Positions 6,525 through 24,876 of a DNA stretch of 64,000 nucleotides are shown piece by piece. Under the pieces are notes generated by a model. It was not told the DNA's origin. It saw only the letters and a list, made by a program, of their open reading frames with translations, and did no database searches. Origin of the DNA: Dimorphilus gyrociliatus (lineage: Eukaryota; Animalia; Annelida); contig CAJFCJ010000019.1 in the NCBI GenBank assembly GCA_904063045.1, positions 434,001 to 498,000 on the forward strand, read 5' to 3'. Numbering within the stretch: the stretch's first letter is position 1; each line of letters opens with the position of its first letter. Both the position numbers and the translations under genes were made by a program.

Positions 6525-7294
6525 AATCCCCTTAGACTAGTCATTGAGACATTCCATATTTTTATCATGTTTAATACTACTTTATTGATATGTAAATATC
6601 TCTTTTATTTACGTGCCATTTTCCTAATTTTTTTTATACCTGAGTGACGGTGGCACGGGTGATTGTAGTTATATTCTGTTTAAATGCGAAATGATCTAGC
6701 CTGTGCTCTCACATCATTGAAATGCCCGATGTGAGCTGAAAAGATTCATATATAATTTGTTTCCGCTTACAAATACATATTGTATGTATTGACAGATTTT
6801 ATCGGTTACTTATTGAAAGATGGTATTATAACAAAGTATTGATTGGGCAGAAATATTGCCCAATTAAACAAATCCTAAGCCTAAAAAGTGGATTGATTTT
6901 AAGCTATTTATGAAACTAAAGAGCTAATTGCTTTTATTCAATATATTTTTATGCTTGTTTTTTATCGGGAAGATAAGGAAATGAGAGCAAAATGCTTCTT
7001 TCGAAGGTCAATAATAAAATATAAACCATAATTGCGCAACCAATATTCGAAATATTATTATCTCAATATTTTTTTTCTCAATTGGGAAGCCTATTTATAT
7101 GTTAAGTTATTTGATGAGATATATGGAAGAAATAATACTGCTCTTCGAACGTAACTTAGGGCTTGTCTATATTGGGATAAATCTATCAAAATAAGTCAGG
7201 ATACGATTTGTTGCGTGTTATTGAAAGGGATAGAGAGAATATTTTAGTTCAATTGTTCAGCTAGTCTCCGACTGATTATTCATAGTGATGTGTC

Positions 7295-7350
7295 ATTGTG
7301 CAATAAAGCTAGTAGCCAATCACAAAATATTTATATTGACTGACGCAATA
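7295..7350 (+). promoter_or_regulatory. C/EBP-type site + CCAAT box module upstream of RBR copy 1
   Basis: ATTGTGCAAT (7295-7304), 9-nt spacer, AGCCAATCA (7314-7322), then TGACGCAA (7341-7348); ATTGCGCAAC also at 7031-7040. Same arrangement upstream of copy 4. Confidence 0.6.
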
Positions 7351-7506
7351 TCTGTAACAAGTATATTAAAATAAATCAGCTTGTTTTTATTCTAATGAAG
7401 TATAATATGTTGAGTTGTGAGTTTGATTGGTGAAGTTCGATATTCGAATTTTGGACTTGACATTTTGCATTAGTGTTTTTGTGAAAACAAATACTGTTCT
7501 CATAAA

Positions 7507-10392
7507 ATGATGGACGAAATAATAGACAAACCCTCTAGGGTCTATCAGTTTAAGAAACTACCGTATGGTATTCGCACAGGCAACAGTTTGAAATTAAAGA
7601 GATTCAAATATTTTCATAAGAGACATCAGGAGCGTGTCTTTAAGTGGGTCTTCTACGATAAATATACAAAGAAGGAAGCGGAGAATATTTTAAACGATTG
7701 CGATAAGGTTCTTGCGGATGGACTGCATTCTTTTGCTCAGAAGAAAGTTGCGCGTTATGGTCCCATTTCGTCGCCGTTGGCTTACTCGCTTAACAAAAGA
7801 AAGCGATGGAATTTACCTTATCATATCCAAAATATCGCTAAGAAAGATTCTCTAAGCGAAGAAACTTATAAAGTTTGCTATCTTGAGAGATTTTCAAATG
7901 TAGCAACTCTTCCAGGATATTACGGTTGTGGATGCACACTCGACCAGATTGCGTCGGTAAGAACTTTTTACAATGAGAATGGTGAAATAAAAAGACCTGG
8001 GAAGAAGTATGGATTCGAACTTGACATGATAAATGGTAGTAACAATCGCCCTAAACTTCAAGACTTCGTATTAAGGCAAATTGATAATGAAGAAAGCTAT
8101 TTCCAAGTTATTTACGACATTTGTAAAATACGTCCTATGGATTCTCTAGCGAAAGGAAATTTCGGATTCTATCCAATGGCATATTATGATAAAAAGATGA
8201 ATGCTCAAAAGCATAAAACGCCTGCAGGAAAAAGATTCGATAAATGTTTAGATTCTAATTATTACTTGAGGCGCTATATTGACGAGGGAATTATACACTT
8301 CAATAGTCTGAGCAACAAGATGGAAACGGAGGAGGAGGAAGAAACAAACACAATTCATCATTCTTCTAACATAGTCCTAGGAGATTTTATAACGAAGAAA
8401 AATATACGAAAGCGTAAGCAAAAACTATCAAAGAAGAGAAGTTATGTTAATTTTAAAGAGGAATCAAAGTCCAAAATCATTTATTTAGATCAAAATAACA
8501 TAAATACTAACAGCATTAGCTCGATAAGCGATTTTGATATAAAAGAGCATACGGAAGAGATCGAAGAAAGTACAAAATTGATAAACACAGAGGCTATTTT
8601 CGAATTTTATTTGCCTCTGAAATCCTATAAATCGTTTCTATTGGTTTGCTCCCAAAATAATATTCCTGTTCTAGATGCAGAAAGCTCTCCTCCTTACTTT
8701 TTATTGGACTTTTCCAAAATAGTTGAAAATATCTGCGCTTCAACAAGGCATTATACGAACAAGATCAAGCTAATCAGAGCTTTAGGTTTGATGACACCCT
8801 ATAGCGAAAACGATAAAGCTGTTATAAGTATGACGTTTTATTCGAATATCGAAAGCAGTCGGGCGTTAAAAAGTCTAAAAACTGATGCTAAAAATGTAAA
8901 CGATATGATTAAGATGATTAATCATCATGTTTCCGGTTGGTTGAATTCATCGAGGGATTTTATTCGAATTATCGATTTAACGGGAAGCAAGAGAGATGGA
9001 AATATAAGAGATAAGCCACATAAAACCAGAATAATAAGCGGTTGGATTCTAAATAACTTTGGATTTAGTCAAACATCTGCAGAAAAATTTGACATATTCC
9101 TTTCCTATTTAAAATCCTATTGGAATAACAAAAAGCCTGATATTAGCAATTTCTCGGGTGAATTAGAAAAGAAGAATGATTGGCAGATCACTTGCAAAAT
9201 TTGTATGATAGAAAAAGATACCCATTCTGGTTTGGCTATGAAATGCGGTCATTGGTTCTGTTTTGCCTGTTGGAAAAATTATTTGTTATATAATCGATCC
9301 CGTAACTTAAATTGCCCTACTTCAAAATGCCAGCAACAAATTGAACATCCTATTTGGTTAGCCGCAACGACTTTAAAAATATTCCAACACATAGAAAGAC
9401 TCACAGTTAGAAAGCTTATAGAACAAGAGAAAGTATGGATCCATTGTTCCAACTCAGCTTGTAATTTGTTGACAAACGTCAATAATAGTATTAAAATTCC
9501 CATAGTTGAATGCTCTTGCTCTAATCAATGGTGCACAGAATGTTTGGATGTTTTTCATTGGCCTGCAACGTGTAATCAAATAAGATATTTCAACGAGGTA
9601 ATAGATGATTCTGGTATTGAAAAAGATCGATTTATGAATGAGTACTACATTACTGAAATTAGAATATGCCCACATTGTAAAGAGAAGGTTGAAAGAGAAT
9701 CAATTATGTGTAATGAAATGCAGTGTATATGCGGTGGAAGATTTTGTTGGAATTGTCTTAAAAAGTTATACGAATGGGAAACTCACGATTCTAACGATTG
9801 TTCTAATGAAAATCGCGAAATATTCACCTTTATAGATGATGGATTTCTAAAAACTGATAAATTCGAATTCCTTCAAACAGTTTATAAATCGTTTAACGAT
9901 TTTAATACTTTAGACGTTTACCCCCAATCTAGATCAACTTTTAATGGATGGAAACGCACAATAGAACGTCAGCTGCCAACTGGAAAGGCAAATATTCGTA
10001 AAGAAATTGAGAATGAATTTTTAAGCATTTTACAAGACTGTCATTACTTATGTCATATAAGTGATTATATTGTAATGAATACTCTCGTATTAATTTACTT
10101 CTCTGGAAATGAAATCGCATGGAAAATGGTTTCTATAGAATTTCTTGAGAAACGACTCATTCTCGAAAAACTTCTATTACGTTCTATTTTAGCAACAAAG
10201 AGATTGAGAGAAAAATTAAATGGTACTAATTTTTCATTGCCCGAAAATTGGATAGCTCAAATAACATCTTTAAAGAATCAACTCGAAAGGTCTTTAATTA
10301 ATATCATCAACAATAAATCTATTCCTTACATTAGATGTATGGCATCGAAAATAACTTTAGATCGTAATATATGGTCTATTCTACCTACATAA
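7507..10392 (+). CDS. RBR E3 ubiquitin ligase, copy 1 (961 aa, intronless; unassigned N-terminal region, RING1-IBR-Rcat, helical C-terminus)
   Basis: Single ORF. RING1 CKIC..KCGHWFCFACW..CPTSKC; IBR CSNSAC..CSCSNQWCTECLDVFHWPATC; Rcat CPHC..MCNEMQCICGGRFCWNC. Confidence 0.9.
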   Translation: MMDEIIDKPSRVYQFKKLPYGIRTGNSLKLKRFKYFHKRHQERVFKWVFYDKYTKKEAENILNDCDKVLADGLHSFAQKKVARYGPISSPLAYSLNKRKRWNLPYHIQNIAKKDSLSEETYKVCYLERFSNVATLPGYYGCGCTLDQIASVRTFYNENGEIKRPGKKYGFELDMINGSNNRPKLQDFVLRQIDNEESYFQVIYDICKIRPMDSLAKGNFGFYPMAYYDKKMNAQKHKTPAGKRFDKCLDSNYYLRRYIDEGIIHFNSLSNKMETEEEEETNTIHHSSNIVLGDFITKKNIRKRKQKLSKKRSYVNFKEESKSKIIYLDQNNINTNSISSISDFDIKEHTEEIEESTKLINTEAIFEFYLPLKSYKSFLLVCSQNNIPVLDAESSPPYFLLDFSKIVENICASTRHYTNKIKLIRALGLMTPYSENDKAVISMTFYSNIESSRALKSLKTDAKNVNDMIKMINHHVSGWLNSSRDFIRIIDLTGSKRDGNIRDKPHKTRIISGWILNNFGFSQTSAEKFDIFLSYLKSYWNNKKPDISNFSGELEKKNDWQITCKICMIEKDTHSGLAMKCGHWFCFACWKNYLLYNRSRNLNCPTSKCQQQIEHPIWLAATTLKIFQHIERLTVRKLIEQEKVWIHCSNSACNLLTNVNNSIKIPIVECSCSNQWCTECLDVFHWPATCNQIRYFNEVIDDSGIEKDRFMNEYYITEIRICPHCKEKVERESIMCNEMQCICGGRFCWNCLKKLYEWETHDSNDCSNENREIFTFIDDGFLKTDKFEFLQTVYKSFNDFNTLDVYPQSRSTFNGWKRTIERQLPTGKANIRKEIENEFLSILQDCHYLCHISDYIVMNTLVLIYFSGNEIAWKMVSIEFLEKRLILEKLLLRSILATKRLREKLNGTNFSLPENWIAQITSLKNQLERSLINIINNKSIPYIRCMASKITLDRNIWSILPT

Positions 10393-10835
10393 CTTGATTT
10401 CACCCTCCTCTCTCCTTCACCACCTATCCTCTAGTCCTCCTTCCTTCTTTCTTATGCATACAGTTTATTATTTATTTTATTGTTTCATTGTTTACAGTTA
10501 TCTTTTTACAAGTATAACAAAGATACTGAATACATTAATAATATTTGATATTATGTTTAAACTTTTTTTTATATATGTAAATGAGCCACCTGTCAGCCAT
10601 GTTTTTTTTATAACTATTGTTTTTTTTATATATACTATGTAATAGAATACAGTTTCGGTTATGAAATTTTTACGTGTTTATCACATTTTGATTATAATAA
10701 ATTATTGTTTATATTATTATTATTATTTTATCTTTATTATCTTATTTTTATAAGAAATATTCAGGATATAGAATATCTTTGCTTATATTTAAAATATTTG
10801 TCAACGACTCCATTTTGTTTTCTTAGTTGCAGTTG

Positions 10836-10881
10836 GTTGTGCAATGTTTTGTTATGACTACTTGCACTAAGCTTGCGCAAC
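10836..10881 (+). promoter_or_regulatory. C/EBP-type sites upstream of RBR copy 2
   Basis: GTTGTGCAAT at 10836-10845 and CTTGCGCAAC at 10872-10881, 130-175 bp before the ATG at 11010. Confidence 0.5.
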
Positions 10882-11009
10882 AATTTTATATATAAAAATG
10901 TTAAGTAGAATGATGATCATTTGTATACCGCTTTTACCTCTAGGATTATTTTAGTTCATCAATTCTCTTTCGAAATCTAGTTTAAACATTTATCGAATAT
11001 ATTGAAAAT

Positions 11010-13652
11010 ATGGAGTTTGATGAACCAGTAACCGTAAAAAATTCAGTTTTATATCCAAATCGACTTTATTACAAAGACTTTCGTACGGGAAATAGAATTA
11101 ACTATAAAATACTCCGCAAATTTCAAAATTTATCGGATCATTTTGTGCAAAAAGAATTTTTATACGACGAGAGTCTTAATTTAAAAGAGGCTAAGCAATT
11201 GTTCGATAATAGAATTAGGGAGCTGGATGACGGAGGATTAGAAGCTGATCCCGAAAATTACTATATACCTTTTCTATATTCGACTAATAAACGAGGCCGG
11301 TGGCAAATTCAAGAAGATATTAATGCGGTAGGTAAAGCGAAATGGTTGAAAGGAGAAGATTACTCAATCTCATATAATGAACGACACATGGGAAATTTGA
11401 CTAGACCAAATGTCAAGCTACGTTGTAACAGAGATGGTATCGTCAAGAAGTCAAAAACGCTATCACGCCAAAGAGATTTAATGGATACAAATAAGCCAGA
11501 ATTGGATGAAGAATGTCCTGTTTCTATACAGTATTCCTTTTTTGCACCTGGTGTTATAACATCAAACTCAAAAAGTGGGTGTTCAAATGAGCTAACCGAC
11601 AAAGTTACTCTAACTCGCATGAGAAAAAGGAGAAACTGTTTTATTGAGAGAGAGAATCTTTCTACTGATTCTATTAGGCATATTTTTAGTCCACCCGACG
11701 AGATTGACTGCAAGAACCTAACTGACGATAAAGATACAGCTAGTCCTTCTAATTACTCACTCACCTTAAATGATTTCATAGTTGATCAGCAAAAGAACGA
11801 AAGAATTAAAAAGGGAAAACGATGTAAGAAAGGAAGAAAGCTCTCTTGGAAGAGTTTAGAAAAAAGTAGGCTAAAAGAAGAAGAAAAAGAAGAGATTGAA
11901 GAACTTGAAACATTTTTGGAGAGTAATTTAAATAAAGATAGCAGAGAAGAGATTACTTTTAAATTTATACTCCCAGCGAAATGTTATAAATCGTTTTTGA
12001 TTGACTGTTCCGAGGAAAATATTTATGTTCTAGATGCTGAAACTAATTCGCAGATGTTCTTGCTAGATTTTACGTATAAAATAAGAAACACTTTCCTAGA
12101 GTATGGCATGGATGAGAACGCCGTAAAAATGTTTCGATTTTTAGCACTAACCACCTTTCTTTGTGATAATGACAACATCATAATGAAAATGGTTTTATAT
12201 ACGAATATCAACTGCAATTCGACTTTAGCAAGCTTCGAAAATTTTAGCGAAAGCTTTAGTAGTGCAATTAATGAGGTTAATTATCATATTTTTTCATGGT
12301 TGCAAAGTTATTTACCTTTGAGAGAATTTTATGAAAAGACTGAATCGAAGAATAAGCAAAAAGGTGAAAAGGAATTGTTAAAATTGGTTCACGAAAGTGT
12401 GTTTGGCAATCAAATGTCTACAAACTACGAAGACGTGTGGTTAGGTAGTTTGAAGAATTATTGGGAAGAAAATAGACCAAAGCTCGAAGATCTTGATATT
12501 ACTTTATTAGAAGTTGACGACTGGAATATTCAATGCGATATTTGCATGGAACAATATGATACCTCCGAAGGTCTATCCCTAAAATGTAAACATTGGTTTT
12601 GCATTCATTGTTGGAAAGAACATTTGTCTATATTCAATTTCAATTGTCCCACTTGCCCAATGGTCAATTGTAAAGTTCAGGCTAGCCTTCCAGTGTATTT
12701 GGCTATTCTGAACTTTGATAGATTTATTACAATGGAAAAGAGAATAATTGAGAAAACAATTAAAAATGAAGCTTGGGTCTACTGCAAAAAGCCAAAATGT
12801 CAAAAACTAACTAAAATGCAAGGCATACAAAGTTCAACCGTTTTTTGTTCATGCTCAGAAAAATGGTGCAAACTTTGCGGTTTGGATGAGCATTGGCCTT
12901 CGTCTTGCAATCAATATCAATATTTTTTACAATTTCAGCAAAAGATTAAAAACCCGAGAAATGCTAATTTTGATGAATTAATTTTGATTGTCTCTGTCAG
13001 AAAATGTCCATTCTGTGGAGTTCTGATTGAAAAATTTGACGGCTGTAATGAGATGCTTTGTCTTTGTAAAAATTCATTTTGTTGGAAATGTTTATCTCCG
13101 TGGAGGCAATGCGTAAAAGGATGTAAGCAAAAGGAAAAGGAAAGTCAAGATATAATATTCACAAATGAAAAGTGTATAAAAACACTTCAATATAGACAGG
13201 CAATAAGGGAGGAGAAAATGTATCCCAAATTGAAGATGATATATTCACAAGTCGAGAAATATACAAGGCAAATGAATATTCCATTAAACGATTTCACCGA
13301 GGAAAATGTAACAGAAACTCTTGTCAACTCGACTTTTTTGTGCAAGCTAACCTCTTCATTGTTAAAAAATTGCGCCATCTATACGGGAACCTTAATTAGA
13401 GAGGATCTTCCATCAGAAATCTTAAGAAAATTGTCTAATCTACAAGAGTTACTTAATCGAGCTGAAACGTTCGAAATGAAATTACATAATTTAATTGAAC
13501 TAAACAATAGAATGGTGTTTAGAAAGTCCCGGCTCGAAAATGTTATTAAGACCCGAGAATCTTTAGATAAATTAGTAAAAGAAATAGTCTTCTCTTCCCG
13601 AGAATTACAAGGAAAAATGCAAATTTATAAACAAGATACAGCTGTTATCTGA
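11010..13652 (+). CDS. RBR E3 ubiquitin ligase, copy 2 (880 aa, intronless)
   Basis: Single ORF. RING1 CDIC..KCKHWFCIHCW..CPMVNC; IBR CKKPKC..CSCSEKWCKLCGLDEHWPSSC; Rcat CPFC..DGCNEMLCLCKNSFCWKC. N-terminal blocks shared with copy 1 (RTGN, NKR.RW, F.F.LP, FLLDF). Confidence 0.9.
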   Translation: MEFDEPVTVKNSVLYPNRLYYKDFRTGNRINYKILRKFQNLSDHFVQKEFLYDESLNLKEAKQLFDNRIRELDDGGLEADPENYYIPFLYSTNKRGRWQIQEDINAVGKAKWLKGEDYSISYNERHMGNLTRPNVKLRCNRDGIVKKSKTLSRQRDLMDTNKPELDEECPVSIQYSFFAPGVITSNSKSGCSNELTDKVTLTRMRKRRNCFIERENLSTDSIRHIFSPPDEIDCKNLTDDKDTASPSNYSLTLNDFIVDQQKNERIKKGKRCKKGRKLSWKSLEKSRLKEEEKEEIEELETFLESNLNKDSREEITFKFILPAKCYKSFLIDCSEENIYVLDAETNSQMFLLDFTYKIRNTFLEYGMDENAVKMFRFLALTTFLCDNDNIIMKMVLYTNINCNSTLASFENFSESFSSAINEVNYHIFSWLQSYLPLREFYEKTESKNKQKGEKELLKLVHESVFGNQMSTNYEDVWLGSLKNYWEENRPKLEDLDITLLEVDDWNIQCDICMEQYDTSEGLSLKCKHWFCIHCWKEHLSIFNFNCPTCPMVNCKVQASLPVYLAILNFDRFITMEKRIIEKTIKNEAWVYCKKPKCQKLTKMQGIQSSTVFCSCSEKWCKLCGLDEHWPSSCNQYQYFLQFQQKIKNPRNANFDELILIVSVRKCPFCGVLIEKFDGCNEMLCLCKNSFCWKCLSPWRQCVKGCKQKEKESQDIIFTNEKCIKTLQYRQAIREEKMYPKLKMIYSQVEKYTRQMNIPLNDFTEENVTETLVNSTFLCKLTSSLLKNCAIYTGTLIREDLPSEILRKLSNLQELLNRAETFEMKLHNLIELNNRMVFRKSRLENVIKTRESLDKLVKEIVFSSRELQGKMQIYKQDTAVI

Positions 13653-14089
13653 TATTATTCATCAAGAAAAAAATATACAATATACTGTCTACACTATATC
13701 AAATTTTTCGTATGGAAATAATAACAGAAATATAGTATATTATTGATGTTATGCGTAAATAAAGTAGATTGTATAGTTAAAAGAAAAAACAAGAGAGGTT
13801 TAACGTAGCCTTTTTATTCTCTCTCTCTTTATTCTTCTCTTATAAATGAATGAAACGGGATAGAAAATTTAGAGAAATATTTATTTAACTGATGAGGGAA
13901 TGGACTAAAATAAACTATGATTTTCTTTTCCCCTTCAAAAGAGAAAAGAATGTTACTGTTATTTTTTTGCTATACAATATTAATCACTATTTTCTTTCTT
14001 TCTTTTTCTAAGTTATTAAAGCTAATCGGACTCTTCATCTTCAGCCTAGAAAAGAGATAATTGTATGCATAGATTAATCAAATAAGATA

Positions 14090-15109
14090 TTACATAATGT
14101 TTAGATGACTTACATTGACGATAAGAGGAGTTGTTTGTTGATTGAACCGTTCTAAATGAGGTATTATGGCTGTCCAAAGTTTATCCTCCCTAATTTTAAA
14201 CCCTTTCGGTGAACATCCTAAAGGACCAACAGTTTTTGAACACATAAGAATCGACAAAAGGATAAATGATATAAAATGATACATCAAGTTAAATTGTACA
14301 GAATTAGCATCCATTAAATGATAGCGAACTAGATTCCAACCACCATACCAGAACGTTAAAGTACAAATTGCACCTAACGAGGCTATTGATTGACGTAATA
14401 TGAATTGATAAACATTATTTGATCTTTCGTAAACGTTACAGAGTTTATATTGAATAAGATGTATAAATATGGCTAGAATATAGCCAAATAATGTAAATAG
14501 TCCATAAACAATTAGTTTATTTGACTTATTGAAGGTGTAATTTAGAATATTCCAAACTGAACGCCATATTTGAATTGCTGGTGTTGTGACTATAAACAAA
14601 GTAGCAAGAGAATCCAATGGAAATGTTAAATAATATTTTGACCAGGGTTGAGTATTAAATAAAGTATGAACTTGAAATACTGTTTGTAAATCATCAACTT
14701 CTATGAGTACTGGAGTGAAGTGAGATGCGTGAAGGCTTCGTAGGATAATTAGTAAGATAAATGATACTATCATCAAGATTATACTGGAAATTAGTCCTTT
14801 TCCAATAACTTCATCCCCAAACCACCAAATTCCTTTCCATAGTATTACAGTTGAACAGGCTGTGAAATATATTAGAAAACAACTGGCGATACGCCTACTA
14901 AATATGTTTGTCGGAAGTAAACCACTCTCAACTAACGGTGTTGCAATGTAACAACAAAACATAAAAGCATAACTCGCGTATAATAATAAATACGGTTTAA
15001 TATTGTAAAAACTACAAAATAATTCAACTAATCTAAATGATCCAGCCCAGAAGAATACACTTAAAATTGAAACAAGTGTCAGAGAAATTATTCTTAAAGA
15101 CCTTGACAT
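14090..15109 (-). CDS. Intronless polytopic membrane protein (~8 TM), Fuseless-family-like
   Basis: 339-aa ATG-started ORF made of four repeated hydrophobic units, each with a W-x-G/S-x-W/F motif (FWAGSF, LWKGIW, IWRSVW, FWYGGW). This is the pattern I recall for Drosophila Fuseless; the family call is from memory. Confidence 0.6.
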   Translation of the reverse strand: MSRSLRIISLTLVSILSVFFWAGSFRLVELFCSFYNIKPYLLLYASYAFMFCCYIATPLVESGLLPTNIFSRRIASCFLIYFTACSTVILWKGIWWFGDEVIGKGLISSIILMIVSFILLIILRSLHASHFTPVLIEVDDLQTVFQVHTLFNTQPWSKYYLTFPLDSLATLFIVTTPAIQIWRSVWNILNYTFNKSNKLIVYGLFTLFGYILAIFIHLIQYKLCNVYERSNNVYQFILRQSIASLGAICTLTFWYGGWNLVRYHLMDANSVQFNLMYHFISFILLSILMCSKTVGPLGCSPKGFKIREDKLWTAIIPHLERFNQQTTPLIVNVSHLNIM

Positions 15110-15690
15110 TTCTTTACTATCCTCCAGATGTCGTTAGCTCATCGTCGATAATTATGTATTCCCTGTACATTTTCTTAAATAAGATTAATCTCGATTTTAA
15201 AGATGATTTTAAAGAGACTTTTACTTTGATAATTTATTGTTCGTTGTAAATGGCTTACTTTCGTATAAATGCCATTAATTTTCATTCTAACCCAACTGGG
15301 AAAAAGAGAAAAGGGGTACAAAGGTCTTCAAAGGCAAAAAACAGAAGAGAGGGAGAGGTCGTCTTCTACTAATAAATTAAAGTAGGAAGAATTCAGTATT
15401 TCTTTATGAAAAAGATTTCTAAAGAATAAGTCGATAGACGGATATTCCTTTACATTAGTAAATCATTCTTAGATCGAAAAGCTTTTAGACAAGAAAACAA
15501 ATGAACATTTCAAGGAATACAGAATTTTAAAGATAAAATACTTTTTACTATATCCGTCTTTTTACGCTAAAAGCATTGATAAACACTTGGTTCACTTAAA
15601 AAATAGGGTAATGTTTAAACACATATTTAAAATTTTCAACTTATCCAGTTTTACCCGTTTTCGTTCTGAGCTTGAATATTTTCCTTTTTT

Positions 15691-15772
15691 GTTATGCAAT
15701 ATTCAAAAATAGAAATATATTGACCAATAAGAATCGTCAATAAATATCTATAACTTTACGGAGTTGTGCAAT
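15691..15772 (+). promoter_or_regulatory. C/EBP-type sites and CCAAT upstream of RBR copy 3
   Basis: GTTATGCAAT 15691-15700, CCAAT 15724-15728, GTTGTGCAAT 15763-15772. Confidence 0.5.
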
Positions 15773-15827
15773 CTATTAATATAAAATAGAAGTTCAATGT
15801 TATGTAAATATTTTTCATAATTTAAGA

Positions 15828-18302
15828 ATGAGCACAATGTTGTCCGATGAACGGCGGGAAGGAAATTCTTTAAATCTCACAACTACAGTTTTAACAGAAA
15901 CGAATTCAAATTGTCAGGAAGTTAATAATGAGGAAAATGATAAACATCTTATAAGATTGTGTATCTATTCATTGTATGCAATTTACGTATGGACTATCGT
16001 CGTAAGGTCTGTTCAATTAGGTTTAAGAGATGTTGAACAAAGATTATTTGTGAAAGTATCAAATAAAAGGTCTAAGAAACGACATTTGAATTTGCGTAAA
16101 ACAATTAAAGAGTATTCTCATGAAAATCAATTCAAAAATCGCTCAAACTTTCATATAAACTCGCAAGATTATTGTCAATTCAATGATAATAGCTATGATG
16201 ACATTTTTCATCAACCTCTTCCCGAGAAGTTTTCAAAGTTTCGTCAGAGGAAACGGGAGAAAAAATATTGCAAGAGAGACAGAGATGATCTTTCATATTC
16301 TACTGAACAACAAAGATCTTTAACTAAAGAACATAAACGAGCTATCTGTAAACAATCTTTTAAAGATCTAGACTCTTTTTTATATTATCTAGATGACCTT
16401 CTCACAATGTTGAAGTTAAAGAACAGGAAGAAAATGATGTCAACGATGACACTTCTGATCAAGTTCGTCATGTCAGCTATTTAAGTGATTTCATTCAAGA
16501 AAATCATACCAGAAAGAAATCATGTGATAAGTATCGAAAGAGAATTTCTATCCTACCTATTAAACCGATTCGATGGGTTATACACCTAGCAGAGAATCTA
16601 CCAACAGTTATAAAGAACACTGATGAAAAGCTATTAAACAATTACACTTCTATAAACTTTGAATTTTTTCTGCCGTTCAATTGTTCATTTTCCCTTGCCG
16701 ATTGCGACATAGAAGATATTCCTATCATTGATGGTCAGAGTACGCCTCCTCTCCATCTTCTAGACTTTTCATCTTATATACGTACTATTCTTCTAGCCAG
16801 AGGAGATCTCTCAAGACGCAAGGATCTGGCTAGAGCTCTTATTTTTATGAAATATCAAAGATGTGAAGAGGTAGTAAATATTAAAATGAATTTTGCCCCG
16901 AATATTGCCTCAAGCAATAGTCCATCTACTATAAAGCCTTTTCATGTAGTAAACTTTAAAGAACTCATCGATATAGTAAAGCAAACGATAAATGACTGGC
17001 TAAAGAAGGCAATCCTAATAAATGTATTAGATATTTGTGATTTACAAACAGGCTGCAACAGAGTTCAAGTAGAGATAAAGTTGGGTGATTTGGTTAATGA
17101 AAACTTAGGAATATCTCCTAATTTTGTTTTAAAAGAAAAGATATATTACTTAAGTATACTGGAATACTGGAATAGAAATAAAATAGACTTGAACGATGTA
17201 AATATAATGATGGTGTCGAAAAATAACCGTATTTGTAATAGTAGTAATATCAGAAGTGTTGTATGTAATATTTGCTACATGAAGAAAGATAACAATGAGA
17301 TTATAGCATTAAAATGTAATCATGAATTTTGCATAGCCTGCTGGAAGAGCCATCTGAGAATATCCAATTCTGATATGTGCCCAGAATATAATTGTGTGGA
17401 GTACGTTAGTCTACCTGTGTATTTTTCACTGATGGATCTCAAATTATCAATTAAACGTGAAAGAGAGGTTGTAAATAAAATCAGTAGCAAACTTTGGTAT
17501 TCTTGTTGGAAGGATAATTGCCAATATATGATAAAAAAGAATGAAATGATAAATTCTTTAATGATTGAATGTTTATGTTCGGATAATTGTTGTTTCGATT
17601 GCGGTAAATCATATCATTGGCCAGCTTCTTGTAATCAACAAACCATATTCGAATCATACATTTTTATCGATGTATTACGAAATTCAATTCAATCTCTAAG
17701 GCTTGTTTGTCAAGTTAAAACTTGTCCAAATTGTAAACGTATGTTTGAAAAGATGGGAGGCTGTGATTCAATGAGTTGTATCTGTGGAATAGCATTTTGT
17801 TGGAAATGGTCAAAGGAAATAAAAGGAAATCATCATAGAATTTGTTTATCTGTTGTTAAGCCTGAAGAATTTATCTTCGAAAAGATACGGCTTGTTTCGG
17901 AGTCCTATTACATTGCTGTTGCCTTGACAAAGTCTCTAAAAAATCTCACCTACAAATCTCAAGAATAGATTAAAACTTCGACAAAATGATCAAAGGCAAA
18001 TTTATGATGAAAAATTAAAAACTAGTATTAAGAAGGAATTACCGTATAGAGAGCTTATTTTAAGAAACATAGCAATTTTCCTAGGAATATGCAACTTGAA
18101 TATTAAGTTACCAAATGATATTTTAATTGATATTAATGACCTAAAAAAACAACTACAATTAACTTACAATTTATATCTGTCTTTGAAACGTGAACTATTC
18201 ATTCAAAGAGAAAAGATCTTCTATCAATCAATGAAAAGATTGAAATACTTTGAAGAAAAATTTAATATTGAATTTAAAAGGACAATTCAGTTATCTTCTT
18301 AA
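15828..18302 (+). pseudogene. RBR E3 ligase copy 3, broken by two frameshifts (or assembly indels)
   Basis: Frame changes near 16395-16405; the RBR-homologous frame is open from 16397 (..SYLSDFIQ..NFEFFLP..) through RING1-IBR-Rcat to TAG at 17966-17968. Homology to the copy 4 C-terminus (YRELILRNIAIFLG vs YKELFLIKNMAIFLG) resumes in another frame from ~17940-17965 to 18302. Rcat reads FCWKW rather than FCWxC. Confidence 0.75.
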
Positions 18303-18974
18303 TTAAAATATAATAAACAATTCGAATTTCAATTATAAAAAATTACTCTTTTTTCTATTTCAAGTATTAATAATCCAATAATTAATCCTATAAAGAATAG
18401 CGTAGGCTCAAATATTCAAATAGGCTGAGGTTATGTAATCATTCATTCGTTCGTTTGTTTAATTATATATGCTATAGGCCTATAAATTGGCGAATAATTC
18501 TGAGCAATAAATTCTTAAAAATCAGCATTATTTTTTAAAAATGCAAACTAAAATATATTTAATAATTCTGTTAATTGCTCTATAGACTAAGAATTCCCTT
18601 GGTATTTGATTCGTTTGTAGAGTTTAGATAGTTATCTCGCATTTGAAGAAAAACAAACAAAGTCATAAGCAAAGGACGTATTTAACAATGATAATTGTTT
18701 TTTTTTTTGTAACAATTAGCAGACTTTCAGCGTTATTGATAATATAAGTTTAACATATAACAAAAATGGAGGATCATTTCAAAAAAGAACAATTCCATAA
18801 TTTATTTCTATTATCGCTCTTTTTTTATTACTAGGAAAGTGTTTACAATATTCGAGATGGTAAACAAATATTAAAAAGAATTTCTTTAAGAACTTATTAC
18901 CTTTTGCTATTAAGTGGATTAAACTAATAAGTTTAATAAATTTAATAAAATGATATTGTTTATTATTAAGTTGA

Positions 18975-19042
18975 ATTGTGCAATAGCCGGTTCAGCCAAT
19001 CAGAAATATCTTAGGCTTACATTTTTCGCAAGCTTATGCAAT
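18975..19042 (+). promoter_or_regulatory. C/EBP-type site + CCAAT box module upstream of RBR copy 4
   Basis: ATTGTGCAAT (18975-18984), 9-nt spacer, AGCCAATCA (18994-19002); CTTATGCAAT at 19033-19042. Confidence 0.6.
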
Positions 19043-19143
19043 TCGTTTTGAAAGCCTTTCTCGACGTATATAACACGGCTAGAATAAACCAACTCATTTC
19101 ATTTCAATTAGAGTATCATAGGAAGAAGATAGATAGTATCATC

Positions 19144-21849
19144 ATGTTCGAAGATCAAATTGAAGAGAAACCATCGAAGAAATATAACAAAAAGTGCATT
19201 AGTAATAAGTATCTAACTGGGCACAGTGTTAAACATGGCAATATTAGTAAGAAGAATCGCGATCGTCTTTTCAGCTGGATTTCTGATAAAAATGGATTCA
19301 TTGATAAAGACATCAACTCTTTTATTGAATCAGATTGTATTCCTACAAACAATGTAGAAAAACAGACGCATGTAGCAAAGAGTCGTTTGCATTTTGTGAA
19401 AAATCAAGATGACCAGAAGCAATACGCTCTGGAACTTTCGTTAAACAAAAGGAATCGTTGGAATACAGTTCAACAAACTGAATACAGTGAATCTGCTGAA
19501 AGATTAGATTATATAAGCGAAAATAATTATTCTATACTTCTACTACGCCAGACTCAACAAAAATTAATAAAGAAGAATATTGCAGAAGGTCAAACTTTCT
19601 ACGATAAAAATGGAAAAGTTCGAAAGAATATAAACGGAAAGCGTATTCGTTCAAAAATCATATCTGAAAGTAAAGAAATCAAAAAGCCTAATAACGAATT
19701 AGATATTGATAATACCGAAATTATGTTTGAAGTTTATCGATGTAAATCGGCATGTTCAAGGAAACGAAGGCATGAAACTTTCAAGTTAAAAGAAAAAGTC
19801 GGAAATAGAGTTAAACTTGAAACTTATACTCAACACTTTAAAAATGAGGTCTTAAGTAAAGCTGATTTTCAATATTCTTATGATGATGATGATGATGATG
19901 AATTTGAAGAATACGATGATTGTGAATACTCAAATGAAGCTCCTGCAAAAATCTGTCTGGCTGATTTCTTTTCAAGACCACGTTTAAAAGAAAAATCGAG
20001 AAATTCATCACAAGCAAGCTTGGAATCTCAAAATACTGCTAGTTCTCGTAAAGGACAAACAGTTGTTCTCAATGAAAACTATACATATAATTATAAAAAT
20101 CAAAAATATGATAGTCTTCCCCCTGAAAACCCTATAACTGCAAACTTTGAATTTTCTCTACCTACTAGTTGTTCACTCTCCTTTGCTGATTGTGATCTAG
20201 AAGATATTCCTATCATTGAAAGTCAAAGTACACCTCCTCTCTTTCTTCTAGACGTTTCATCTCAGATACGAACTATTCTTCTAGCCAGGGGAGATCTTTC
20301 GAGGCGAAAGAATCTGGTTAGGGCTCTTATCCTTATGAAATATCAAAGAAATGAAGATGCACTAAATGTTACAATGACTTTTACTGCCAACATTACTACA
20401 AGCAATAGACTCCCTCCTACAAAGAGCTTTAGTGTATCCAATTTCAAGGATATCGTTTACAACTTAAAACAAACGATAAATGACTGGTTAAAGGATGCAA
20501 TTCTAATAGATATATTAGATCTTTGCAATTTATTCTCCACGAAGGAGATAAAAATGAACAAAAATGGAACGATAAGTGATTTAATTCACGAACATCTAGG
20601 AATGACTCATAAAATTCGATCAAGAGAAGATACGTTCTACCAAAATTTGGAGGAGTATTGGATTGAGAATAAAACAAACGTAGAAATGGCGCATTTAAAA
20701 ACTACAATGGACGATAACACAAACCTCGTTTGTAATATTTGCTTCATTGAAATTGATAAAGGAAATAGTTTAGCATTAAAATGTAACCATTACTTCTGCA
20801 TTCAGTGCTGGGAAAGTCACCTAAAGTTTAAATTTATTGCCACCTGTCCTCAGTTTCAGTGTGATGAACCAGTTAAACTGCCTGTATACTACGCTTTATT
20901 CGGTTATTTGTTAACTTATCGAGTAGAGTCTAAAAGGGTCTCTGAAAGGAATATGGGTCAATGGTTAGCTTGCAAGAATTTTCAATGTAACTTAATGCTA
21001 AAAATGGAAAATATGGACAAACTACCTATGTGTGAATGCTTATGCAGTAAACATTGGTGTTTAGATTGCGATGATAACTTTCACTGGCCATCTGCGTGTG
21101 AACAACAAAAATTATACGATCAATTACGCAACCCTGGTAAAGGATCATCAAATGCACTGGGACAAGTAGTTGTTCGTGTTAAATCATGTCCCTATTGCAG
21201 ACGCAAATTTGAAAAGAATGGAGGTTGTAATTCAATGATGTGCCACTGCGGAGCTAATTTTTGTTGGGCTTGCGCTAAGCCAATGAAAAATCATATCAAT
21301 TGTAAACTTTTGGAGGAAGAGAAGTTCGTATTACGAGATTACCAATATTTCAACATGAGGATGATCAATCTTGCCGAGACTTGTTCTAGTACTTTGGAAT
21401 CTCTCAGAAACTCTTCAGAAAATCATGAAAAGTTGTTTCTCTTCTATAAAGATCAATTCAGCTGGTTAAATGAGCGTGAAAATAAGCGTTTCTTTATTAA
21501 CTTAGTGCAAAAAGTCAAATTTCAATGCTATAAAGAACTATTTCTCATTAAGAATATGGCCATCTTTCTTGGAGCTTTTGATGCAAGGGTGAAAATACCA
21601 AAAGATTTATCTGAGAAATTAACCCAATCAAGAAAATTTCTTAGTTCAGTATATTACCGAATCAAACTGCTAAAAAATTCAGTAGTTGGCAGTAAACGCC
21701 ACAAACCTCAACTATCTTTAAAAAATATTGAAAAATTTTCAATGAGATCTAGTAAAGATATGAAGGAGCTCGTTAAAATATGCCACGAGATAAAAGAAGG
21801 GAACTTTCAAAAATATATCTTAGATTCATTACACCATTTAAACTTGTAA
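19144..21849 (+). CDS. RBR E3 ubiquitin ligase, copy 4 (~901 aa, intronless)
   Basis: ORF is open from 19036, but ATG 19144 (MFEDQIEEKPS) aligns with copy 1 MMDEIIDKPS and is the likelier start. RING1 CNIC..KCNHYFCIQCW..CPQFQC; IBR CKNFQC..CLCSKHWCLDCDDNFHWPSAC; Rcat CPYC..GGCNSMMCHCGANFCWAC. Confidence 0.9.
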   Translation: MFEDQIEEKPSKKYNKKCISNKYLTGHSVKHGNISKKNRDRLFSWISDKNGFIDKDINSFIESDCIPTNNVEKQTHVAKSRLHFVKNQDDQKQYALELSLNKRNRWNTVQQTEYSESAERLDYISENNYSILLLRQTQQKLIKKNIAEGQTFYDKNGKVRKNINGKRIRSKIISESKEIKKPNNELDIDNTEIMFEVYRCKSACSRKRRHETFKLKEKVGNRVKLETYTQHFKNEVLSKADFQYSYDDDDDDEFEEYDDCEYSNEAPAKICLADFFSRPRLKEKSRNSSQASLESQNTASSRKGQTVVLNENYTYNYKNQKYDSLPPENPITANFEFSLPTSCSLSFADCDLEDIPIIESQSTPPLFLLDVSSQIRTILLARGDLSRRKNLVRALILMKYQRNEDALNVTMTFTANITTSNRLPPTKSFSVSNFKDIVYNLKQTINDWLKDAILIDILDLCNLFSTKEIKMNKNGTISDLIHEHLGMTHKIRSREDTFYQNLEEYWIENKTNVEMAHLKTTMDDNTNLVCNICFIEIDKGNSLALKCNHYFCIQCWESHLKFKFIATCPQFQCDEPVKLPVYYALFGYLLTYRVESKRVSERNMGQWLACKNFQCNLMLKMENMDKLPMCECLCSKHWCLDCDDNFHWPSACEQQKLYDQLRNPGKGSSNALGQVVVRVKSCPYCRRKFEKNGGCNSMMCHCGANFCWACAKPMKNHINCKLLEEEKFVLRDYQYFNMRMINLAETCSSTLESLRNSSENHEKLFLFYKDQFSWLNERENKRFFINLVQKVKFQCYKELFLIKNMAIFLGAFDARVKIPKDLSEKLTQSRKFLSSVYYRIKLLKNSVVGSKRHKPQLSLKNIEKFSMRSSKDMKELVKICHEIKEGNFQKYILDSLHHLNL

Positions 21850-22621: not shown

Positions 22622-24876
22622 TCAATCCACAGGTTCATTTTGTGGAAATTTTTTATCACTATTCTGTTGAGTCCTTTCAAATCTTTCTAACCTTCTCTTT
22701 CGTAATTCATTTTCCTGGGTATCCTCAGCTCTTGAGGAATCTGCAGTTACTTCTTCAGAAACAGCGGTATACCCAACAGCACCTTCTGTTTTCGAGGAAA
22801 AAAATTGAATTAGCTTGCATACGCTCTATAGTTTGCAATCAATTTCTACTAAAAGATCATACCTAGTTGTTCGTCGGTTGTTTTACTTTGTGAGGAGGGA
22901 GATGTAGCTGTTTCCCTATTCTCTTCCTTTGTAGTACTAGTTTCCGGTTGTGGGTCTTTATTGGTGTAGGCACTCCAGTCAATATTAGCAGTTATTGAAC
23001 TATATTGATGAAAATGAGTCATAGCAGCATCAAGAAGAGTTCGAATATTTCTCAAGCACATTATTCTTGCTTCTACAGCTCGTCTCTCATTTCCTTCCAA
23101 ACTTCTTAGCTGCTCCTCGGTCATTTGAGCCAGCTGCTCTGGCATTATAGGAGCAACGGGTGGTGGAGGAAACGACGGCATACCGAGTGTGAAAAAGGGC
23201 ATAAAAGATCCCGGAGGAGGTGGAGGAGGCGGGTTAACACCCATAGGTGGTAGAGTAAATGGTACTCTGGGAGCTGATGAAGTATTAACACTAGTTGTGG
23301 GTGTTGGGGTAGTTGAAGAACTATCGGTTGCTAGAATAGTGAGAAGACGACGTGAAGTAAAAAAGCTCCTTTTCTTTTAAAAAAAATTAAACTTACTAGT
23401 TGTTTGTGCTGATTGATTCGGTTGTCGTGGAACTTGTGGTGGTGGAATAGGCCAAAAATTGGGCATTTGAGCAGGTGCGGGAGCAGGCTGAGGTGCTGGT
23501 GCCGGCTGTGGGGGTGGAGGAACTCTATTTGCTTGAGACGTTTCAGACTGAAGCACATCTAATCGACAGATAGGACATGATTGTTGACGTTGGAACCAAG
23601 AGCGAAGACAAGATGTGTGAAAAATATGCCGACATGGTAGTTTTTTACAGGAGCCCACAGCCATATCTTCTCGGCAAATTATGCAAACATTATCGGTTGC
23701 CTGAAGTTCTTCAGCAGTCGCATTAGGATACAGAGTATTCATATTTCTAATTGCTCTTCGAGATTTAATCACGTCATTCAATGACTTTTTGAATGATCTC
23801 ATAGTTAAATACAAAGGCCTTATTGCAAAAAGAGGGAACGTTAGAACCTTAATCATGATACTAAAGAACAAAACGTAGAGAACGACTTTGATGAAGCCGA
23901 GAACAAGTTCACCATATAATAAGTAAACGGCTTTATTCTCCCATGGATTTTCCGATTGTAAATCAATAGCATGTAGGACGTATTTCATAAGGACAGTAGC
24001 AGTCACAGTTAACAAGATAGCATACTAAAAAAAAGATAATTGAAAATTCAATCTATGTCTATTGTTAATTTTAAGAAAAAAAATTTACTTCAAATCCGAA
24101 CACCAGTTGAACAGATGCTCCTTTTATTAATATGCTTTGGTAAGCATGATTGATCAAAAATAAATCCAAGCTGCTTAGTAGAACTATAAAAGCTATGTGA
24201 AAAATATAAAAGAAAATATATAATTTTTATAAATAATGTATAAATGATGTATCTTTTTTTATAAATTGATAAGTTACCTATAGCTCGTATATGAAATAAG
24301 ATTGATATCGCAGGACTCCTTTCCATCTGTAAAGTATGATTGGCGTTAAAACAAATAGTAATTTTTTATTAGGTCTACTTACATAGTCAATTCTATCTTC
24401 TGATAGCCAATGGAATCCTTTCAAAAATAGAAGGAGAGTGAACATTGCTACAAATTTTGGACTAAAGTCATCTCGGAATACTGTGAAGGCTAAGCAAGTT
24501 TCTGTCACGGCGTACCAAGATTTTTCAATAAGATGCTAGAATGTGAAAATATTAGTAAAAAAAATTTTTTTGAAATATATAAAATCAAACAAACTTCAAC
24601 TTCTGCTGCTCTTAATTGACCAAAAAATATCTTTTTTAAAAGCTTACCAAATAATACAACGAAAACAAAAGCTTGGGCGTATAATACCTGTAAAAAAGAA
24701 TTAGATCTGTAAATGAACCAGATTATCGCTCATATTTATAAACTTACCGCCATACTAGGGTTAGATTTTGTCAAATAGACTACAGAAGGGTAGAATTGAT
24801 TTTTCTGATAAAAAGCATTGAAAATAACTCCAGCCGTTAAGGCGAAACTACTCAATGTTACTAGTACTGCTTTCAT
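22622..24876 (-). CDS. SYVN1: Synoviolin / HRD1 ERAD E3 ubiquitin ligase (multi-exon)
   Basis: ATG 24876: MKAVLVTLSSFALTAGVIFNAFYQKNQFYPSVVYLTKSNPSMA; TETCLAFTVFRDDF; RING-H2 CIICREDM..CKKLPCRHIFHTSCLRSWFQRQQSCPICR; Pro-rich region; EQLRSLEGNERRAVEARIMCLRNI; final exon ELRKRRLERF..VD* with stop at 22624-22622. Confidence 0.95.

Follow-up and report, generated by a model that had tools for sequence, protein, structure and literature searches.

A C/EBP-type site shared by the promoters of an RBR ubiquitin-ligase family in Dimorphilus gyrociliatus and distant relatives

The 9-mer TTGTGCAAT, found upstream of every gene in a four-copy array of RBR (RING-between-RING) ubiquitin ligases in Dimorphilus gyrociliatus, is probably a variant of a bZIP response element, with the consensus RTTRYGCAAY(A), that belongs to the promoter of the whole RBR family, under purifying selection since before the annelid, mollusc and hemichordate lineages split, with a putative C/EBP-family and NF-Y drive. 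Because the same site recurs in the array, in scattered paralogs and in mollusc and acorn worm relatives, the family has the look of a long-conserved target of a single bZIP factor. A family-specific C/EBP-type site, a CCAAT box and the encoded factors make shared regulation of the array the natural reading of these sequences.

The array and its promoter sites

The window, meaning the whole 64,000-nt stretch of DNA analysed, contains these genes:

7507..10392, + strand: RBR copy 1, intronless ORF of 961 aa, Pfam RING plus IBR
11010..13652, + strand: RBR copy 2, intronless ORF of 880 aa, Pfam matches
14090..15109, - strand: Fuseless-family membrane protein gene (PF15993, E = 4.8e-32), convergent with copy 2, a synteny anchor
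15828..18300, + strand: RBR copy 3, frame disrupted at least twice (near 16484 and 17968)
19144..21849, + strand: RBR copy 4, 901 aa from the conserved N-terminus

As judged from their translations, the genes downstream of the sites are predicted RBR E3 ligases, with RING1, IBR and RING2/Rcat in order. Pfam zf-C3HC4 plus IBR matches occur in all four array copies, the Cys and His columns are invariant in the family protein alignment, and ARIH1 and ARIH2 are the nearest solved structures to copy 1. The start of copy 4 was placed at ATG 19144 by alignment to the family N-terminus; the first ATG of its ORF, 19036, falls within the proximal site TTATGCAAT and is spurious as a start. The promoter features are as follows, with negative numbers giving distance from the start codon:

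7031..7044, + strand: far-upstream ATTGCGCAAC (7031-7040), a match to the C/EBP core TTGCGCAA that overlaps a CCAAT pentamer, ~470 bp ahead of the copy 1 start codon
7295..7304, + strand: copy 1 distal C/EBP-type site ATTGTGCAAT, -211
7314..7322, + strand: copy 1 CCAAT box AGCCAATCA, 9 nt past the distal site
7341..7349, + strand: copy 1 proximal site TGACGCAAT, a CRE/C-EBP hybrid
10836..10845, + strand: copy 2 distal site GTTGTGCAAT, -173
10873..10897, + strand: copy 2 proximal site TTGCGCAAC (10873-10881), TATA run 5 nt later; no CCAAT box in copy 2
15692..15700, + strand: copy 3 distal site TTATGCAAT, -136
15722..15730, + strand: copy 3 CCAAT box GACCAATAA
15764..15786, + strand: copy 3 proximal site TTGTGCAAT, -64, TATAAAA 7 nt downstream
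18975..18984, + strand: copy 4 distal site ATTGTGCAAT, -168 from ATG 19144
18994..19002, + strand: copy 4 CCAAT box AGCCAATCA, 9 nt past the distal site
19010..19020, + strand: third shared element, copy CTTAGGCTTAC, 7 nt past the copy 4 CCAAT box
19034..19042, + strand: copy 4 proximal site TTATGCAAT, 33 nt past the CCAAT pentamer
19067..19073, + strand: copy 4 TATA-like TATATAA
55466..55474, - strand: fifth TTGTGCAAT, antisense within a coding exon; taken as a chance copy outside the system

Exact copies of TTGTGCAAT occur in the window at 7296, 10837, 15764 and 18976 on the forward strand and at 55466 on the reverse strand. The forward copies all lie on the coding strand, 211, 173, 64 and 168 bp before the start codons of copies 1, 2, 3 and 4, which bears out the claim of the initial annotation that one 9-mer precedes all four genes. 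Its rough estimate of one chance copy per window also agrees with window shuffles, which predict 0.96; the copy at 55466, being antisense in a coding exon, is counted as that one. The further C/EBP-like sites that it had listed are likewise present, at 7031-7040, 7341-7349, 10873-10881, 15692-15700 and 19034-19042. Outside the motifs, the upstream regions of the four copies could not be aligned by global alignment.

The usual layout is a distal site, a forward CCAAT box, a proximal site and a TATA box, such that in most promoters two sites flank the CCAAT box and the TATA box follows the proximal site. A consensus CCAAT box adjoins the site in seven of the nine copies in this genome, and AGCCAATCA or a one-mismatch form of it is found in 7/12 promoters (0.21 in shuffles), in forward orientation throughout. 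These are candidate NF-Y boxes, matching RRCCAATSR in the proximal promoter of a genome that encodes an NF-Y subunit. Two promoters, those of copy 2 and its ortholog in a related species, have no CCAAT box. Scoring of the promoters registered the third element only in C99, C301/C120 and the related-species P0008; an exact TGTAGGCTTAA lies at the same offset in C99 and P0008.

Copies 1 and 4 share the 32-nt arrangement ATTGTGCAAT-N9-AGCCAATCA(C/G)AAA exactly, at 7295 and 18975 (0 expected), and their spacers differ as described at the outset, with 1/9 bases in common. The proposed C/EBP-N9-CCAAT module therefore stands for these two copies but not as a rule for the family, since the gaps from distal site to CCAAT pentamer elsewhere are 8, 11, 11, 15, 18, 23, 29, 29 and 32 nt; a spacing of 33-35 bp from CCAAT box to proximal site is more widespread than N9. 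This bears on the suggestion that C/EBP and NF-Y, acting through the exactly spaced composite, make the array a module inducible by stress, injury or infection. The exact N9 around an unconserved spacer in copies 1 and 4 speaks for it, the variable gaps and the two promoters lacking a CCAAT box speak against it, and we hold the suggestion to be possible, though doubtful. The NF-Y regulome papers contained no C/EBP-NF-Y spacing rule that we could find. A published match to the 9-mer, in a pig-pathogen study, is a cloning primer and irrelevant here.

The sole sequencing run found, X1, consists of contigs only, with rough 5' ends and no strand. Transcript-like contigs of depth 144-160 lie over copies 1 and 2, and these two genes are accordingly not silent without a known stimulus, a further point against an inducible module. 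One contig (7355-10439) spans copy 1, and both copy 1 sites are upstream of its 5' end at 7355, the proximal one immediately so. For copy 2 the 5' end of the contig is 10840, which falls within the distal site; in this gene the site could thus be at or after the start site.

Enrichment in the family and in the genome

The element is not special to the array, for it marks the RBR family as a whole, both in D. gyrociliatus and in a related species, and extends to other phyla. Outside the array, three of five paralogs carry the exact 9-mer at -150 to -159 and a fourth carries TTACGCAAT and TTGCGCAAT; no site was found in the promoter of the paralog C24. Altogether, the exact 9-mer is present on the coding strand of 7/9 paralogs no more than 250 bp from the ATG, where the chance per promoter is 1.8e-3. 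The degenerate site, in coding-strand orientation, occurs 20 times in 12 promoters versus 0.95 expected, and all 17 of the asymmetric sites among these have the same orientation. Their consensus is R-T-T-R-Y-G-C-A-A-Y-A, in which GCAA is the same in all 20 sites, and the variants in the family (TTGCGCAAY, TTAYGCAAY and TGACGCAAT) all preserve the GCAAY half-site. Variants of the C/EBP-type site are also the top words in a k-mer search of the promoters, above all shuffles.

With the site as anchor, flanking DNA shows 34-35% identity, compared with 28% for random sequence, while the 9-mer is 100% identical. Between the paralog proteins in D. gyrociliatus identity is 23-29%, the terminal branches of their tree measure ~1 substitution per site, and the site is present in both deep clades of the paralog tree; when related-species orthologs are included, RBR identities run from 23 to 41% overall. 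The motif has thus persisted while the proteins diverged, as had been noted from the array, and flanks at random identity beside such diverged proteins argue that the site has been kept by selection. The P values treat each promoter as an independent case, which common descent makes untrue, and the argument rests on the saturated flanks rather than on P values alone.

Two checks proposed at the start were an exact genome-wide count and enrichment upstream of family members; the latter is seen in the 7/9 promoters above. For the former, the genome contains 1143 copies of TTGTGCAAT in 77.9 Mb, against ~1170 scaled from the window shuffles. As the count equals expectation, the 9-mer does not rank as a word common to promoters. 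The composite of the 9-mer and CCAATCA has nine matches genome-wide, four of them in the RBR family (reversed control, 0); the other five were rejected as targets, two being within coding exons and none an obvious promoter. The two-site pattern has 20 matches, three in the RBR family (control, 5). Among the 17 outside it, only a tandem ARL-like GTPase pair looks like a promoter match, and no regulon was apparent.

A recurrence without function, whether by chance, as a relic of gene conversion or of a recent duplication, or as a genome-wide promoter word, could draw on the AT-richness of the genome and on the fact that the copies are paralogs, in which the site was inherited and not independently gained. 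Such an origin is already contradicted by the expected numbers (0.96 per window and 1.8e-3 per promoter), by flanks at random identity, by protein identities of 23-29%, by the genome-wide count, and by the same site in another species and other phyla, and we consider it extremely improbable.

Conservation in other species

Three orthologs were found in the related species, each with two sites and a TATA box. Their RBR proteins are 33-41% identical to those of D. gyrociliatus, versus 62% for the neighboring Fuseless. The RBR-Fuseless gene pair also occurs there, and the syntenic copy 2 ortholog has the copy 2 layout. A 13-mer, CCAATAAGAATCG, is common to the promoters of copy 3 and P0008.

Word-based protein searches, with copy 1 or the family profile, returned the query itself and one Saccoglossus protein only; the family relatives were recovered by exhaustive HMMER search. 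In molluscs and the acorn worm the family N-terminus reads MV.K..GVRSGN. Exact TTGCACAAC, the reverse-strand form, is on the coding strand in seven of nine distant members, namely those of Mercenaria, Haliotis, Bradybaena, Saccoglossus and three further assemblies, and the other two have near-matches only. It lies at -104 to -165 in six and at -302 in Saccoglossus, between a CCAAT and a TATA box in 4/7 carriers, with one box or neither in the other three; there is a single background copy in 80 kb. At L027-L029, no site occurs at the called ORF starts; it is found at the true first exon, which is separated from them by an intron and lies further upstream. The distant species keep the asymmetric ACAAC half and not the palindrome.

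In three distant loci, the site is directly adjoined by AANNGAAA, a core of IRF-like type.

Apart from housekeeping sets (histone, heat-shock and ER-chaperone genes, for example), few promoter words persist exactly from one phylum to another, and the word described here marks an RBR ligase family absent from the papers found. Anything that activates the bZIP would be expected to turn on the entire family at once, in D. gyrociliatus as in clams, abalone, land snails and acorn worms. For reporters, the element is defined as two sites, a CCAAT box and 33-bp spacing, and four bZIP genes can be named as possible regulators. A frozen control site before fast-changing proteins would suit effectors that share one control and are engaged in an arms race. 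Rapid evolution of this kind (33-41% identity beside 62% for Fuseless) combined with tandem amplification is frequent in immune and stress effectors, and to that extent lends weight to an inducible module, as do the IRF-like cores; against it, no paper found mentions the mollusc or Saccoglossus members of the family.

Candidate factors and known systems

The genome encodes plausible cognate factors of the C/EBP family. The basic regions of L012 and L013, two small C/EBP-gamma/Irbp18-like proteins, have the C/EBP signature NNIAVRKSR, and the best solved relative of L012 is C/EBP-beta (1.5e-15; ATF4, 1.8e-4), while that of the longer C/EBP-like protein L031 is C/EBP-alpha (1.6e-6). ATF6-like and XBP1-like bZIPs and NF-YA (C19:3502306-3502598) are also encoded. 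With these factors, the 20-site consensus agrees with the original designation of the sites as C/EBP-type. They fit the core TTGCGCAA / RTTGCGYAAY, including the in vivo variant in which TG replaces the central CG, although this TG/CA variant is reportedly bound more weakly by the C/EBP-beta homodimer than is the CG palindrome (10.1101/2020.06.11.146175). Given that the asymmetric form is strictly kept in distant species, the reader may differ or be heterodimeric.

A reader of another kind, for example a PAR/NFIL3-like dimer or L014, would owe its C/EBP resemblance only to the shared GCAAY half-site. The four best bZIP_2 matches in the genome are PAR/NFIL3-like, L014 (contig C22) is equally near NFIL3 and C/EBP and has ATTGCACAAC ~220 bp upstream of its own frame, TTAYGCAAY variants contain a PAR-like half-site, and it is the asymmetric ACAAC half that distant species retain. 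However, PAR and NFIL3 homodimers favour GTAAY halves, whereas 20/20 sites have GCAA; the palindromic TTGCGCAAY, a C/EBP core, is among the variants, and proteins with a true C/EBP signature are encoded. We judge a non-C/EBP reader unlikely.

A typical promoter here comprises a distal site, a forward CCAAT box (AGCCAATCA), a proximal site often 33-35 bp further on, a TATA-like box and a putative 5'UTR of ~50-150 nt. Under the preferred reading, that of a C/EBP-family element, C/EBP-family dimers would occupy both sites, with one monomer reading the invariant GCAAY half, and NF-Y would bind the CCAAT box between them. Candidate readers are the two small C/EBP-gamma/Irbp18-like proteins, the longer C/EBP-like protein, or a heterodimer with the bZIP intermediate between NFIL3 and C/EBP. 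The bound factors would then drive a TATA-type core promoter, which would place paralogs inside and outside the array under one common switch. The binding protein, its activating role and the physiological trigger we infer from the sites and the encoded factors.

A close resemblance in an invertebrate is to 'target 1' of Drosophila Xrp1/Irbp18, a tested activating element: repeats of ATTGCACAAC give up to 23-fold activation in Drosophila cells, dependent on Xrp1 and enhanced by Irbp18 (PMC8933008). This 10-mer is identical to the Mercenaria site and, in reverse complement, to the GTTGTGCAAT of copies 2 and 3, and D. gyrociliatus has its two Irbp18-like C/EBP proteins. In flies, however, the targets belong to stress and cell competition rather than to the RBR family. 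That C/EBP-gamma-type heterodimers are fly stress factors (PMC8933008) again favours inducibility. We tentatively raise a broader scenario, less probable than our main conclusion, in which the RBR family has been wired to the asymmetric site (ATTGCACAAC / GTTGTGCAAT) since before the lophotrochozoan-deuterostome split, the reader is a C/EBP-gamma/Irbp18-type heterodimer like Xrp1/Irbp18, the ligases serve as core, rapidly evolving effectors in a stress or immune programme of ancestral origin, and in bivalves an IRF may exert co-control through the adjoining AANNGAAA.

Vertebrate C/EBP-plus-NF-Y TATA promoters, with examples among liver and acute-phase genes, have the same site (TTGTGCAA is an in vivo form of the C/EBP motif), a forward RRCCAATCA box adjoining it, TATA downstream and the same encoded factor families. 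Here, by contrast, the module marks one RBR ligase family across phyla, two same-oriented sites flank the CCAAT box, and the arrangement is known from sequence. The ERSE (CCAAT-N9-CCACG), which is served by NF-Y plus the bZIPs ATF6/XBP1, also sets a bZIP site exactly 9 nt from a CCAAT box, as in copies 1 and 4. In the RBR promoters, however, the order is reversed, with the bZIP site 5' of CCAAT, the half-site is GCAAT rather than CCACG, and the spacing is not kept in the family; no CCACG lies 9 nt 3' of CCAAT in the promoter sequences, and identity with the ERSE was rejected. The ATF4-C/EBP composite (CARE, TGATGCAAT; a TGATG half plus GCAAT) was similarly rejected, with 0/20 sites, the nearest being TGACGCAAT of copy 1. 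In Caenorhabditis elegans, bZIP-driven induction of expanded ubiquitin-ligase components occurs in the ZIP-1/intracellular pathogen response and in ZIP-2/CEBP-2 surveillance. These systems likewise pair fast-evolving, amplified ubiquitin-ligase genes with bZIP-type control, although their ligases are cullin-RING parts where ours are RBR, with no sequence relation known.

The C/EBP-type word upstream of the RBR array

Five copies of the nine-nucleotide C/EBP-type word TTGTGCAAT are present in the window, where dinucleotide-preserving shuffles predict 0.96, in keeping with the initial annotation's hand estimate of about one chance copy. As that annotation had also observed, one exact copy lies upstream of each of the four tandem RBR ubiquitin-ligase genes (copies 1 to 4). 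Each of these genes encodes a protein with RING and IBR domains. The fifth is the expected chance copy.

Exact copies of TTGTGCAAT in the window
7296, forward strand: upstream of the copy 1 ORF
10837, forward strand: upstream of the copy 2 ORF
15764, forward strand: upstream of the copy 3 ORF
18976, forward strand: upstream of the copy 4 ORF
55466, reverse strand: antisense within a coding exon

The start codon of copy 4 is most likely ATG 19144, the position matched by the family N-terminus; the first ATG of the ORF, 19036, falls within a further site, TTATGCAAT. With this start, the word precedes the start codon by 211, 173, 64 and 168 bp in copies 1, 2, 3 and 4, respectively. The reading frame of copy 3 (15828-18300) is broken at least twice, by a stop at 16484 and by a frame change near 17968, past which the family's C-terminal helices run on to about 18300; either small introns interrupt this copy or it is a pseudogene. 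Even so, its promoter retains CCAAT and TATA boxes along with both C/EBP-type sites (distal and proximal).

The 32-nt pattern ATTGTGCAAT-N9-AGCCAATCA(C/G)AAA, for which the expected count is zero, is found at 7295 and 18975, and the two N9 spacers have only one of nine bases in common, so that copies 1 and 4 do share an exact C/EBP-N9-CCAAT module with differing spacers. Counted to the CCAAT pentamer, the distance is 11 nt in both (equal to N9 counted to AGCCAAT). As a fixed arrangement, however, the module does not extend to the other promoters, where the gap is 8, 15, 18, 23, 29, 29 or 32 nt, and the copy 2 promoter is without a CCAAT box; the exact N9 module is thus real but local. Some 470 bp upstream of copy 1, at 7031-7044, ATTGCGCAAC overlaps a CCAAT pentamer, an overlap that recurs as CCAATTGCGCAAT in the promoter of P0008, an ortholog in a related species.

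Promoter architecture in paralogs and a related species

A six-frame search with copy 1 found five more paralogs, named here by their contigs: C9, C301, C99, C120 and C24. The enrichment upstream of family members that the initial annotation had proposed as a check is evident among them, with exact TTGTGCAAT on the coding strand in three of the five (C301 at -158, C99 at -150, C120 at -159) against a per-promoter chance of 1.8e-3 for the word in this orientation within 250 bp; the near-duplicates C301 and C120 were counted once. C9 has TTACGCAAT and TTGCGCAAT on either side of AGCCAATCA, and no site was found in the C24 promoter.

An exhaustive profile search returned three proteins outside the window's genome, P0006, P0007 and P0008 (Logan contigs of runs SRR23372216, SRR23372228 and SRR23372229). 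P0006 is 41% identical to C9, P0007 33-35% to copy 2 and C301, and P0008 28% to copy 4. P0007 is convergent with a Fuseless gene, the exact counterpart of the copy 2 arrangement (window 11010-15109; locus L024), and is therefore the copy 2 ortholog. The Fuseless proteins of the two species are 62% identical, versus 33-35% for the neighboring ligase orthologs, which argues that the RBR ligases evolve much faster than this neighbor and that the family is unusually fast-evolving. All three promoters have two sites and a TATA box.

Promoters in the related species
P0006: ATTGCGCAAC, AGCCAATCA, TTATGCAAT
P0007: GTTGAGCAAT, then GTTGTGCAAT; without a CCAAT box, like copy 2
P0008: ATTGCGCAAT, CCAAT, GTTGTGCAAT

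Across 12 promoters, nine in the window's genome and three in the related species, 20 coding-strand matches to a degenerate site (TTNN or TGAY followed by GCAAY) were counted versus 0.95 expected, and the three reverse-strand matches are solely palindromic sites read backwards. The 20 sites give the consensus RTTRYGCAAY(A), with GCAA invariant, and an unbiased 8-mer search of the promoters places variants of the site at the top, above every shuffle. In most of them the order is distal site, forward CCAAT box, proximal site and TATA-like box. AGCCAATCA or a one-mismatch form is present in 7 of the 12 promoters, compared with 0.21 in shuffles. The distance from CCAAT to the proximal site is more widely kept than N9: it is 33-35 nt in copy 3, copy 4, C99, P0006 and P0008, and 33 nt in C301 and C120, where it is measured to a degenerate ATTGTGAAAC. 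A third shared element, (T/C)(G/T)TAGG(C/T)(T/C)TAA, follows the 9-nt CCAAT box at a distance of exactly 7 nt in four lineages, spanning both clades of the family tree and both species; its TGTAGGCTTAA form is exact in C99 and P0008.

Occurrences of the third element
19010-19020 of the window
L003 (C99)
L002 and L004 (C301 and C120)
L026 (related species)

The initial annotation's remark that the motif persists while the proteins have diverged strongly is borne out: the 9-mer is 100% identical between anchored promoters, and the paralog proteins are 23-29% identical. The regions upstream of copies 1 to 4 cannot be aligned with one another, and 30-nt flanks anchored on the 9-mer show 34-35% identity between promoters versus 28% at random. 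The tree has two deep clades, (copy 1, (copy 3, copy 4)) and (C9, (copy 2, (C99, (C301, C120)))), with terminal branches of about one change per site, and the C/EBP-type site is present in both. Saturated flanks, unalignable upstream regions and diverged proteins, together with occurrence in both clades, indicate that the site is kept by selection and is not leftover similarity.

Occurrence genome-wide and in other phyla

The exact genome-wide count, another check proposed in the initial annotation, finds the 9-mer 1143 times in 77.9 Mb (both strands), close to the roughly 1170 expected by scaling from the window shuffles. Only a small proportion of genes, at most, can therefore have it, and the concern that it is a common promoter word falls away. 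The combination of the 9-mer with CCAATCA within 5-30 nt has nine occurrences, whereas its reversed control has none; four belong to the RBR family, and none of the remaining five, genome-wide, is an evident promoter. Pairs of sites in the same orientation, separated by 25-55 nt, number 20 versus 5 for the control, and three of those 20 are in the RBR family. Outside the family, only a tandem pair of ARL-like GTPase genes has this module just before a start codon. Under the strict patterns used, the promoter architecture is largely a mark of the RBR family.

C9:270412-270478 (L056): tandem pair of genes for ARL-like small GTPases; 68 bp before its start codon, the first has a pair of C/EBP-type sites in the same orientation and a reversed CCAAT

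Many further profile-search matches have the common N-terminus MV.K..G(V/I)(R/H)(S/T)GN. Nine distant loci were read (Saccoglossus kowalevskii, Mercenaria mercenaria, Haliotis asinina, Potamilus streckersoni, Bradybaena similaris, and L027, L028, L029 and L065). For three of them the ORF start as called is wrong; an intron separates it from the real first exon upstream. Seven of the nine have exact TTGCACAAC (reverse complement of GTTGTGCAA) on the coding strand, at -104 to -165 in six and at -302 in Saccoglossus, where there looks to be an intron in the 5'UTR; the other two have near-matches, one change away. Outside the promoter windows of these loci, TTGCACAAC occurs once in 80 kb. Four of the seven have a CCAAT box 50-70 bp upstream of TTGCACAAC and a TATA box 18-40 bp downstream, and the other three have one of these boxes or neither. 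A k-mer search of the nine promoters again ranks the C/EBP-type site first. Its orientation is opposite to that in the window's genome, and both orientations are one transition from the palindrome ATTGCGCAAT, at the central CpG, one per strand. In L027, L029 and L064 (Mercenaria), TTGCACAAC is directly followed by an IRF-like core, AANNGAAA (e.g., ...CAACGAAACGAAAGT), and the two may form a bZIP-IRF composite.

Expression, candidate factors and known systems

The only public run covering the stretch (X1, 2017, contigs, library kind not given) was read over 7000-12999.

Coverage in X1
7089-7361: contig of low depth
7355-10439: contig of depth 144, copy 1, beginning just after the proximal site and ending 47 nt beyond the stop
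10440-10839: uncovered
from 10840: contig of depth 160, 7234 nt long, through copy 2

This coverage looks like RNA and points to expression of copies 1 and 2 in the absence of a known stimulus. Both copy 1 sites lie upstream of the contig's 5' end, and that of the copy 2 contig falls within the distal site. If collinear with the genome, the 7234-nt contig would extend across copies 2 and 3 and the Fuseless gene antisense to them, implying either that transcripts overlap or that the library is DNA-like. The array may be set among other ubiquitin-system genes: a SOCS-box ORF lies just upstream (6210-6524), and just downstream a reverse-strand ORF (23377-24015) has RING-type cysteine spacing (C-x2-C...C-x-H-x2-H), presumably reminiscent of HRD1/synoviolin.

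The window's genome encodes NF-YA and has 32 bZIP_2 matches. Two loci, L012 and L013, encode small proteins (~90-110 aa) with the C/EBP signature NNIAVRKSR, L012 matching C/EBP-beta at 1.5e-15 versus 1.8e-4 for ATF4. The longer C/EBP-like frame L031 best matches C/EBP-alpha and C/EBP-beta, and L014 (C22:200400-201900) is a bZIP intermediate between NFIL3 and C/EBP.

C7:1911461-1913124 (L012/L031): head-to-head small C/EBP-gamma-like and longer C/EBP-like genes

ATTGCGCAAC stands ~90 bp before the L012 start codon (between L012 and L031 only if the L031 frame ends before the site), and ATTGCACAAC ~220 bp upstream of L014, hinting at autoregulation.

We consider the prediction that a C/EBP-type element beside an NF-Y box co-regulates the RBR genes to be well supported by sequence and comparison. 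The fixed N9 spacing is confined to copies 1 and 4, and the inducibility first proposed is a hypothesis. A literature search found no paper on members of this RBR family. The kind of system is already known. The C/EBP core, TTGCGCAA, carries TG in place of its central CG in the motif seen in vivo, and the TG/CA form binds C/EBP-beta more weakly in vitro (10.1101/2020.06.11.146175). In Drosophila S2 cells, ATTGCACAAC repeats give up to 23-fold activation when Xrp1 is co-expressed with Irbp18, the C/EBP-gamma homolog, which alone is inactive on them (PMC8933008). What appears to be new is the link to an uncharacterised, fast-evolving RBR family and the survival of the site as an exact word across phyla.
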